A DNA stretch of 64,000 nucleotides. Origin: Saccostrea cucullata (taxonomy: Eukaryota). Positions 39,701 to 41,493 of the stretch are shown one piece after another. The stretch is from NCBI RefSeq assembly GCF_032062105.1, contig NW_026935501.1, positions 1-64,000 of the forward strand. The letters run 5' to 3'. Each line of letters begins with the position of its first letter. The first letter of the stretch is position 1. The notes below the pieces were generated by a model. That model was not told the origin of the DNA, did not search any database, and saw only the letters and a program-made list of their open reading frames with translations. The translations under genes were made by a program, and so were the position numbers.

Positions 39701-41493
39701 TAAAAGTAAAGGAAATACAGATAAAAATGAATCAGATACTAGTAAAATGCCTTATTTACATGTAATGATAAGTTTGATAAAAGTCTACCTCTCAAATAAA
39801 GACGGTGATAATACACACTTAAATTGTCAGAGTGCTTCCATGGATAGACACTTTAAACGTTTGTTATGCTAAAAAGATATTGTTTTAACCATGTTTGGGT
39901 TTTTTTTTTTAATATTTTGTCTTATAAAGTTTTAAATTCATTTTATATCAGGGGAAAAAATATGCTTGCAAAGTAAGAACAATATTCTAAGTGTATTTAT
40001 TTTCTCTCCTCAGTTTGTGCAGATTTCATAAAGCATGGTGTACAAAGTTCTAAATATAAACACATTCCTAATGCTAAGGTATGTACAGCAAAATAAAAAA
40101 AATGCATCGTTTAGAGTTTGTTTCACGATACATATTAGAATGCTAAAAATGTCGTATCTTAAATATCTATACAGGCAACACTTCAACACAAAAATACACT
40201 AAACTGGTTGGTAGACTAAAGGTCTATGATAGGTGGCATAAGGAACTCTTTAATGTGCAGTGTTTAGAGCTTCCTTAATGTTAGACCTCTACCATTAAGT
40301 TTCCCTTAAGTAGAGTTTCACTGACTTTGTTGTTGTCTAAATGTTATATTAGTAGTTAGATAAATCATGTAAGAAGTTAATATTATACTTAAAATCATGT
40401 GTCCTTGACCTCTGTTTCGTGTCCTTGACATTATCTTGTACATGTAAGATTCCTCTAGGTTCCCTGCCTCACCAGAGAGCTAATCTGACCACGCCCGCAG
40501 GATTCGCCATCAAATCTTCGTCACTTCCGGGAGCGGGGATGGGCGCATGGGCGGAGACCTTTGTTCCGAAGTTCACGATCCTCGGTGTATATGAGGGACT
40601 TATTCACACTGTAGACAAGAAAGATGATTTCTATTCATGGCAGGTAAAATCACACAAAGAATCAAACAAAATGAAAACGAATCGCAGTTGCATATATTAG
40701 TTACATATTCCTAGACCCCTGTCATTGAAACCAGATGGACTAAAAATTTCCTCTGCTTTCGTCCCTCCCTGTCCGCCTGTTTATCCGTTTGACTAGCTTC
40801 TGTGTATGTTGCTTGACTTTGATGAGTTATAGATAAATTTTTATTTTTGATCCACTTCAGTGATTTCTGATAAAATTTTCAATTTTAGAGGAAACCAGAT
40901 TACACGGTAGGGGACTAGTATTGCTAATGTAACACTCTCACAACGCTTTATTTTTTAGATTCTTTTAATCCCTAAATATTCATTACCTCAAAGTTATTTT
41001 GATCAACATGGATCTGATTGTCATCAAGTATAAAATATATAATATATTCTGAACTACAATTCATTCTTAAGCATTATGATCTTATTGTTTTCAAAGGTAG
41101 ATAAGCAGGGGACCGATGGTACTTACAACATAGATGCAGAAGATCCGGCCTGTAGTAACTGGTTACGATTCGTTAATTCTCCCGCCAAATATCAACAGGA
41201 AAATGTCGTTCCTATCACGTGCGAGGGCATCATCTTCTATATGACGTCACGTGATATAGAGCCGGGTGAAGAGCTTCTTGTCTGGTATGGGGACGGATAT
41301 GGGAGGTTTTTAGGCGTAAACCGCATACATCCGGGTAATGAAACAATACATTTTATGGTTAATTGTTTCCATCCGGGTATTTAAACAATCTTCTTATCAG
41401 ATAACTTGACCATATACAATGTGGTCATTAAAACATTTTTATGCCCGCGTGAACAAAGTTTCGAGGGTTTATAGTGTTTGTCGTGTCCGTCCC

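Follow-up and report, generated by a model that had tools for sequence, protein, structure and literature searches.

The first 64,000 nt of contig NW_026935501.1 of the oyster Saccostrea cucullata (assembly GCF_032062105.1, positions 1-64,000, forward strand), called the window below, contain an intact and transcribed gene from a family specific to oysters, in which a PR/SET domain like that of PRDM9 is encoded between two exons resembling the halves of a C-type-lectin-like domain (CTLD). Judged from its sequence, the PR/SET part retains the full PRDM9 set of catalytic and cofactor motifs, and it is under purifying selection. The explanation that we favour, with moderate confidence, is that the gene encodes a secretory, lectin-scaffolded PR/SET protein derived from PRDM9 that would act as a lysine methyltransferase binding S-adenosylmethionine (SAM).

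RNA was mapped over 37700-43470 using contigs from three runs and raw oligo-dT reads from a fourth, and the splice joints were supported by contigs from two studies and raw oligo-dT reads from a third. The GT..AG joints 37965>38317, 38336>39482, 39531>40014, 40078>40449, 40643>41097 and 41334>43149 chain seven exons (Table 1). RNA contigs span 37734-37965, and exons B and C are joined to the last exon within a single contig of 769 nt. All splice sites were canonical, and the reading frame was open through every readable exon to the stop codon. The donor GT of exon 4 lies at 39537, and the RNA contig carrying the joint 39531>40014 differs from the window over the final five bases of this exon. 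The first residue of exon A, the F of F-CADFIKHGVQSSKYKHIPNAK, uses a T brought over from the preceding exon. The putative exon 1 lies outside the RNA-mapped region; its phase fits exon 2, a counterpart sits upstream of paralogous copies, and the N-termini of relatives begin alike. The five-exon module encoding the long helix and the PR/SET domain has phase 1 both at entry and at exit. No lectin-only joint skipping this module (37965>43149) was found among the 15 of 34 joints listed. A nested or independent gene, or a chimera of the assembly, was ruled out by the RNA contig that bridges PR/SET and lectin exons and by orthologues with the same architecture.

Exons were searched singly, and full-length comparisons were made with database relatives of the window protein. 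Exon C alone matched the Pfam family PF21549 (PRDM2_PR) with 76.3 bits (E 2.1e-21; cut-off 27) and SET with 6e-9, and full-length relatives scored 84-97 bits on PF21549. The best PDB sequence match of exon C in phmmer was PRDM9 (5.8e-14). The original prediction, made from the letters of the DNA, had equated the tyrosines of GVYEG, IIFY and LVWYG with Y276, Y341 and Y357 of human PRDM9, which are taken as its catalytic tyrosines (PMC5519329; PMC6116924). HMMER alignments agreed with this assignment, the three residues falling at chain positions 82, 147 and 163 of the PDB sequences (4ijd/6nm4; construct start residue 195). The cofactor motifs GAGMG and (S)NWLRFVN, which had also been described as retained, were found in exons B and C, and the interval 40014-41334 given in that prediction begins with the first base of exon A and ends with the last base of exon C. 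Exon C carries DPACSNWLRFVN, PITCEGIIFY and LVWYGDGYG together with LVWYGDGYGRFLGVNRIHP, SNWLRFVN and EEN, IIFY being the Y341 equivalent and LVWYG the Y357 equivalent.

A profile of 14 oyster PR/SET inserts was compared with 11 PRDM types in the PDB, a comparison that stands in for a family tree. The profile scored 137 bits on PRDM9, 98 on PRDM12, 86 on PRDM11 and 80 on PRDM14, and less than 80 on PRDM1, 2, 3, 4, 5, 10 and 16. For structure, an AlphaFold model was used of the closest full-length relative, P0189 from Magallana gigas (376 aa; 65-75% identical to the large exons of the window gene), built on an alignment of 63 rows with a mean predicted local distance difference test score (pLDDT) of 85.2 and a predicted template modelling (TM) score of 0.80. 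A SET fold was found in this model. Foldseek placed PRDM9 (4c1q_A) first with E 2.7e-15 and a TM score of 0.74, and the VIA alignment matched residues 105-266 of P0189 to PRDM9 204-359 (Z 16.9, 150 residues, 35% identity); in the numbering of the PDB entry this alignment is consistent with the tyrosine assignment given above. In a shape search of the ESM Atlas the nearest clusters were PRDM9/PRDM7/SSXRD types, all chordate; no cluster combining lectin and SET was found there by shape, and none matched by features. Taken together, these sequence and model comparisons support a PRDM9-like origin of the embedded domain. Pfam reported neither a KRAB-related domain nor SSXRD in the full-length relatives, and the upstream exons in the window encode the hydrophobic start, a lectin half and a helix. 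The window gene is not a PRDM9 orthologue: it has no KRAB-related domain, no SSXRD, no intact zinc knuckle, and neither a post-SET finger nor a zinc-finger array.

Selection was analyzed in 12 S. cucullata paralogues with complete exons B and C. The M0 codon model on the genomic tree gave an omega of 0.19 for the PR/SET exons (twice the log-likelihood difference against omega = 1, 86.9), in line with the constrained active site that had been predicted. The mean pairwise nonsynonymous (dN) and synonymous (dS) divergences of the 12 copies were 0.028 and 0.174, respectively, with an intron divergence of 0.15. Pairwise dN/dS was 0.11-0.19 across all four large exons, the lectin exons giving 0.14 and 0.19. 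The aligned oyster subfamilies are only 35-59% identical in the PR/SET domain, and AGxGxW, GxYxG, YxW, SNWxRYxN, EEN, the Y341 and Y357 equivalents and the next G are invariant across them. The equivalents of Y276, Y341 and Y357 are invariant in every oyster family row covering those columns.

Exon 2 (…CSPGFVNVSGWCFSFHKEPTSMLNSSDFCHQQGAHMVVLDSEEKEKVLTKYIE) and the last exon (…WTPVTYQNWNPNDEGE…GRWRWVTERNYTYYTGEDGLKLPFICE…) resemble two halves of a CTLD. Residues 27-372 of the P0189 model aligned with the clam C-type lectin SPL-2 over 131 of 138 residues (Z 11.5), and an exhaustive structural search matched the model to about 25 other CTLDs with Z 9-11. In this model a single CTLD is assembled from both halves, and the helix and PR/SET domain, about 195 residues in all, are inserted between alpha2 and beta2. 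The equivalents of exon 4 form a helix at residues 94-124 (pLDDT 96-98). The cysteines of the CTLD disulfides C0-C0' and C1-C4 (alpha1 to beta5) are conserved in 13-18 family rows.

Eight of nine oyster family proteins examined, and exon 1 of the window gene, carry a hydrophobic stretch whose end lies 8-20 residues ahead of the first cysteine of the CTLD. Kyte-Doolittle maxima over 11 residues were 1.7-3.0 in eight of the nine, and residues 5-18 of exon 1 have a mean of 2.4. The lectin exons of the window gene contain five N-x-S/T sequons in total. A hydrophobic start, CTLD disulfide cysteines and sequons form the usual layout of secreted lectins. From the hydrophobic N-terminus in most full-length members, the CTLD disulfide cysteines and the modelled CTLD fold, we infer that the protein is secreted or enters the endoplasmic reticulum (ER). 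The O-methylation of sugars on N-glycans takes place in the Golgi lumen. Oysters O-methylate terminal GalNAc and fucose of their N-glycans (PMC10301044), so SAM is probably present in their secretory pathway, and a putative Golgi SAM transporter has been described in Caenorhabditis elegans (PMC7614267).

The zinc-binding parts of PRDM9 have largely disappeared from the oyster protein. The pre-SET zinc knuckle had been described as degenerated to FCADFIKHG; in agreement with this, the readable upstream exons hold no C-x2-C, and FCADFIKHG has one Cys and one His. The homology of this piece to the knuckle comes from the structural alignment, which takes the relic in (model residue 105 = PRDM9 204), and the sequence profile aligns to PRDM9 only downstream of it. 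No Cys occurs between CTLD alpha2 and the single 'FC' in the eight full-length relatives read (8/8), nor in the readable exon 3 and exon 4 of the window gene. Thus the first ligand pair of the knuckle is gone, and what remains of the knuckle is one Cys, with a His in the subfamily of the window gene only. The original prediction had regarded the loss of zinc ligands as expected for a domain moved into the oxidising secretory pathway, a cause that may apply. The relic Cys of exon A is kept in all 16 family rows covering the column. Additional cysteines had also been pointed out: that of PITCEG is conserved in 19 of 19 family rows (of 44 PRDM9-like outgroup sequences, 25 carry Tyr in this column), and that of DPAC is not conserved. 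The relic Cys and the PITCEG Cys, which are C115 and C242 in P0189, could possibly form a disulfide.

The absence of a post-SET finger was confirmed by the 769-nt contig. As exon C is spliced directly to the second CTLD half, the transcript encodes neither this finger nor a C2H2 array; about 20 residues persist after the Y357 equivalent. A mouse PRDM9 crystal construct lacking the post-SET finger (residues 198-368) is active (PMC6116924), so its absence from the oyster protein does not by itself preclude activity. The oyster gene can be regarded as a natural test of how far the PRDM9 catalytic module can do without parts such as the knuckle and the post-SET finger. A search of the oyster's own genome with the Pfam PR zinc knuckle (PF18445) gave no match, and the controls gave none either, so this search is uninformative. 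The knuckle piece of a Priapulus PRDM9-like protein gave weak matches about 3 kb upstream of two PR/SET matches of 42-43% (C1728:27816-31115 and C11452:12298-15272). These two loci probably represent a canonical, knuckle-bearing PRDM gene of the same genome in two haplotigs.

S. cucullata, S. echinata, M. gigas, M. angulata and Crassostrea virginica all have proteins that run in the same order of hydrophobic start, lectin half, helix, PR/SET domain and lectin half. For Ostrea edulis, a protein model truncated at its N-terminus retains the PR/SET domain together with the second half of the lectin. Outside oysters, matches were confined to the PR/SET part and came from PRDM9-like zinc-finger proteins of priapulids, thrips, crustaceans and fish. 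Orthologous groups persist in oyster genera at only 47-75% identity to exon C of the window gene. In the S. cucullata assembly (1.17 Gb, 23,869 contigs) exon C had 119 matches, of which about 50 reach at least 80% identity; these counts are upper bounds, since the assembly probably contains uncollapsed haplotypes. The window gene and another S. cucullata copy, L038, were intact in all exons seen, and the copies L033, L039 and L046 were intact over the parts covered. No published description of a PR/SET domain embedded in a lectin was found in the literature on oyster PRDM9, on bivalve C-type lectins with SET domains or under LOC identifiers.

In the proposed mechanism, the protein would enter the ER, where its lectin-like half would become disulfide-bonded. 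The PR/SET domain would bind SAM and methylate lysines of one or more proteins that it encounters in the secretory pathway or extracellularly, and the lectin-like scaffold would supply targeting. The long helix, possibly together with a disulfide of the two family-invariant cysteines, may replace the structural role of the zinc knuckle. Five features of PRDM9 have been lost from the protein: the KRAB-related domain, the SSXRD motif, the first knuckle ligand pair, the post-SET finger and the zinc-finger array.

Several observations weigh against this explanation. Many PRDM proteins have no detectable methyltransferase activity, and purifying selection demonstrates function, not catalysis. On the lectin side, exon 2 scored 15.3 bits and the related proteins 14-21 on Pfam Lectin_C (PF00059), below the cut-off of 22.6, and the last exon alone gave no match to this family; a low score is expected of a CTLD interrupted by an insert. 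By eye, the Ca2+/sugar motifs (EPN or QPD plus WND) were not in their expected place in the last exon. The C2-C3 disulfide is gone as well, there being no Cys between beta2 and PFICE in that exon. As to the locus, a stretch of N at 38337-38470 covers part of exon 3 (up to five codons), and the RNA contigs diverge by 1-4% from the window, so their source may be alleles or near-identical paralogues and not this exact locus. Finally, when S. cucullata copies were checked exon by exon, about 16 of 22 were broken. In these copies the W of GAGMGAW has repeatedly become a stop; the other defects are frameshifts, loss of a start codon or of AG acceptors, 4.8 kb of DNA inserted into exon B, and minisatellites with a 31-bp unit derived from the 3' end of that exon.

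The main rival to a methyltransferase is an insert that transfers no methyl group and serves as a pseudoenzyme, a peptide- or ligand-binding module or a structural spacer on the lectin-like scaffold. We consider this rather unlikely. Most PRDM members show no activity in vitro (PMC9861158), and purifying selection would be expected of a binding module too. However, the three tyrosines, the GxG loop, SNWxRYxN and EEN are all invariant in the oyster rows covering those columns. Partial vertebrate PRDM9 genes that lack the other domains often lose at least one of the three tyrosines (PMC5519329), which makes their retention in the oyster family notable and sets the family apart from such orthologues.

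It is also conceivable, if quite improbable, that the protein is not secreted, the hydrophobic start being a membrane anchor or a mis-modelled exon and the enzyme facing the cytosol or nucleus with intracellular substrates. The position of the hydrophobic start directly before the first CTLD Cys in eight of nine oyster proteins and in window exon 1 argues against this, as do the conserved C0-C0' and C1-C4 cysteines and the lack of any remaining nuclear-type domain; CTLDs are overwhelmingly extracellular. What speaks for an intracellular enzyme is the long h-region of the window gene (about 20 residues when exons 1 and 2 are read together), the putative status of the exon 1 splice and the weakly hydrophobic start of one relative, P0031.

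Least probable is a window copy that is transcribed yet functionless in a decaying family, its low dN/dS reflecting earlier selection on parental genes before a recent burst of duplication: the many copies disrupted by stop codons or frameshifts, by loss of splice sites, by large insertions or by expanded minisatellites, the broken copy 30 kb upstream in the window and the N stretch that conceals part of exon 3 would fit it, but the window gene is open in all readable exons with canonical splice sites, spliced transcripts exist, L038 is intact throughout, and orthologous groups have been kept across genera.

A more far-reaching proposal can be put forward tentatively, namely that oysters make an extracellular or luminal protein-lysine methyltransferase, in which a PRDM9-derived SET domain was re-engineered for the oxidising secretory pathway, its zinc sites having given way to the long helix and perhaps to a new disulfide, and would be guided by the lectin-like scaffold to targets such as microbial, gamete-surface or secreted host proteins. 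To our knowledge, animal SET-domain lysine methyltransferases are nuclear or cytosolic. If the proposal is true, the family would provide a secreted SET enzyme encoded by an animal and a novel type of effector in innate immunity or fertilisation, and protein lysine methylation would extend to the secretory pathway or the extracellular space. The birth-and-death dynamics of the family, with dozens of copies that are mostly broken, would fit a role in immunity or gamete interaction, which is our guess. The phases of the module make the gene a clean case of one domain placed inside another by phase-compatible exon shuffling.

Among solved PRDM structures, the PR/SET domain of PRDM9/PRDM7, a trimethyltransferase of H3K4 and H3K36 (PDB 4C1Q, 4IJD, 6NM4), was the best match in both sequence and structure, with 35-38% identity. 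The oyster insert has in common with it Y276, Y341, Y357, the AGxGxW loop, NWxRYVN and a short post-SET stretch. Unlike PRDM9, the oyster gene places its PR/SET domain inside a lectin-like domain behind a signal-peptide-like start and has none of the KRAB-related domain, SSXRD, intact knuckle, post-SET finger or C2H2 array. It also differs from the PRDM9-like outgroups in the invariant Cys at the PITCEG column. The lectin part is comparable to SPL-2 of Saxidomus purpuratus (PDB 6A7S), a Ca2+-independent bivalve lectin, in the modelled two-half fold, the long-form N-terminal Cys pair, the alpha1-to-beta5 Cys and the absence of a Ca2+-site motif. In contrast to SPL-2, the oyster CTLD is split after alpha2, lacks the C2-C3 Cys and scores below the Lectin_C cut-off. 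Bacterial secreted SET-domain effectors such as Legionella LegAS4/RomA are SET-fold methyltransferases that leave the producing cell, as the oyster protein may do, and LegAS4 was among the weak sequence and fold matches. Unlike the oyster protein, they are non-animal, of unrelated origin and without a lectin scaffold; bacterial secretion systems inject them into host cells, where they target chromatin.

Members of the family appear in databases as 'uncharacterized', 'SET domain-containing', 'PRDM9', 'PRDM7-like', 'PRDM6', 'PRDM16-like' and 'set-17-like'. Several lectin-PR/SET genes of M. gigas, P0189, P0167 and others, carry the plain RefSeq name 'PRDM9'. A study of oyster gonads reported a testis-biased 'Prdm9' (LOC105330008; PMC12111275), a locus that could be either a true PRDM9 or a member of the lectin-PR/SET family. 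Surveys of the presence, copy number or expression of PRDM9 in molluscs can be misled by such names.

Table 1. Exons of the lectin-PR/SET gene and related copies in the window
Feature	Positions	Strand	Remarks
Tandem paralogue, equal exon order, broken	3656..10685	+	stop codons in exon 4 and, at the W of GAGMGAW, in exon B; reading frame shifted in exon 2 and last exon; tblastn
Lone last-exon copy	16912..17205	+	87% identical at protein level; no PR/SET exons found upstream
Putative exon 1	36705..36759	+	ATG, hydrophobic N-terminus MSRGLPIVAVSLLCWIVT, phase 1 end with GT donor; from sequence
Exon 2, CTLD first half (beta0/beta1, alpha1, alpha2)	37738..37965	+	four Cys, two N-x-S/T sequons
Exon 3, readable part (K-MNFFNI)	38317..38336	+	joints 37965>38317 and 38336>39482; runs on into N stretch 38337-38470
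Exon 4 (ELYKIAQREWDIEAEKKN), piece of long linker helix between lectin half and PR/SET	39482..39536	+	joint to 40014 in X1 and X14
Exon A (F-CADFIKHGVQSSKYKHIPNAK), pre-SET relic with one Cys and one His	40014..40078	+	joints 39531>40014 and 40078>40449
Exon B, PR/SET first half, LPGAGMGAW (cofactor loop) and GVYEG (Y276 equivalent)	40449..40643	+	RNA joints; PF21549 16.2 bits alone
Exon C, PR/SET second half, short post-SET stretch, phase 1 end	41097..41334	+	PF21549 E 2.1e-21; joint 41334>43149
Last exon, CTLD second half (beta2 to beta5, PFICE)	43149..43450	+	stop codon 43448-43450; reads and contigs extend to about 43470

The copy at 3656-10685 is a tandem pseudogene. About 60 bases beyond the stop codons of both gene copies, at 43507-43539 and 10745-10777, the DNA translates into a piece resembling exon A (NFIKHGV*SSK vs DFIKHGVQSSK), which may be a trace of module insertion or duplication. 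In several paralogues elsewhere in the genome, the 31-bp unit from the 3' end of exon B (…IHTVDKKEDFYS) is arrayed in ten to more than forty copies (L045:6731-7514, L049:5893-8502, L020 and L030).

One protein of the clam Mercenaria mercenaria, P0038 (XP_053395731.1), combines a signal-peptide-like start and Cys-rich flanks with a PR/SET domain holding all three tyrosines. A word search for relatives returned P0038 alone, and as a singleton it could be an artefact of gene modelling. If real, it would be a second, distinct secretory-type context for a PR/SET domain.

Various repeats surround the exons of the window gene. A 20-bp minisatellite with 42 copies occupies 38675-39490; its unit, ACATTAACAG followed by GAACTCTATT, reproduces the splice acceptor of exon 4 (39482) and its opening codons, and potential decoy acceptors therefore fill the intron. 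An abundant dispersed repeat at 41560-42140 is intronic and transcribed; its RNA word depth reaches about 32,900 in one run, and many of its joints are rearranged. A (TGTC)n/(CT)n microsatellite at 41484-41593 flanks this repeat. Further upstream, a 40-bp repeat present eleven times (36069-36507) ends about 200 bp before the putative start codon, and CT-rich tandem repeats of 24-36 bp at 32331-33730 show a strong strand skew, with a GC skew of -0.53.

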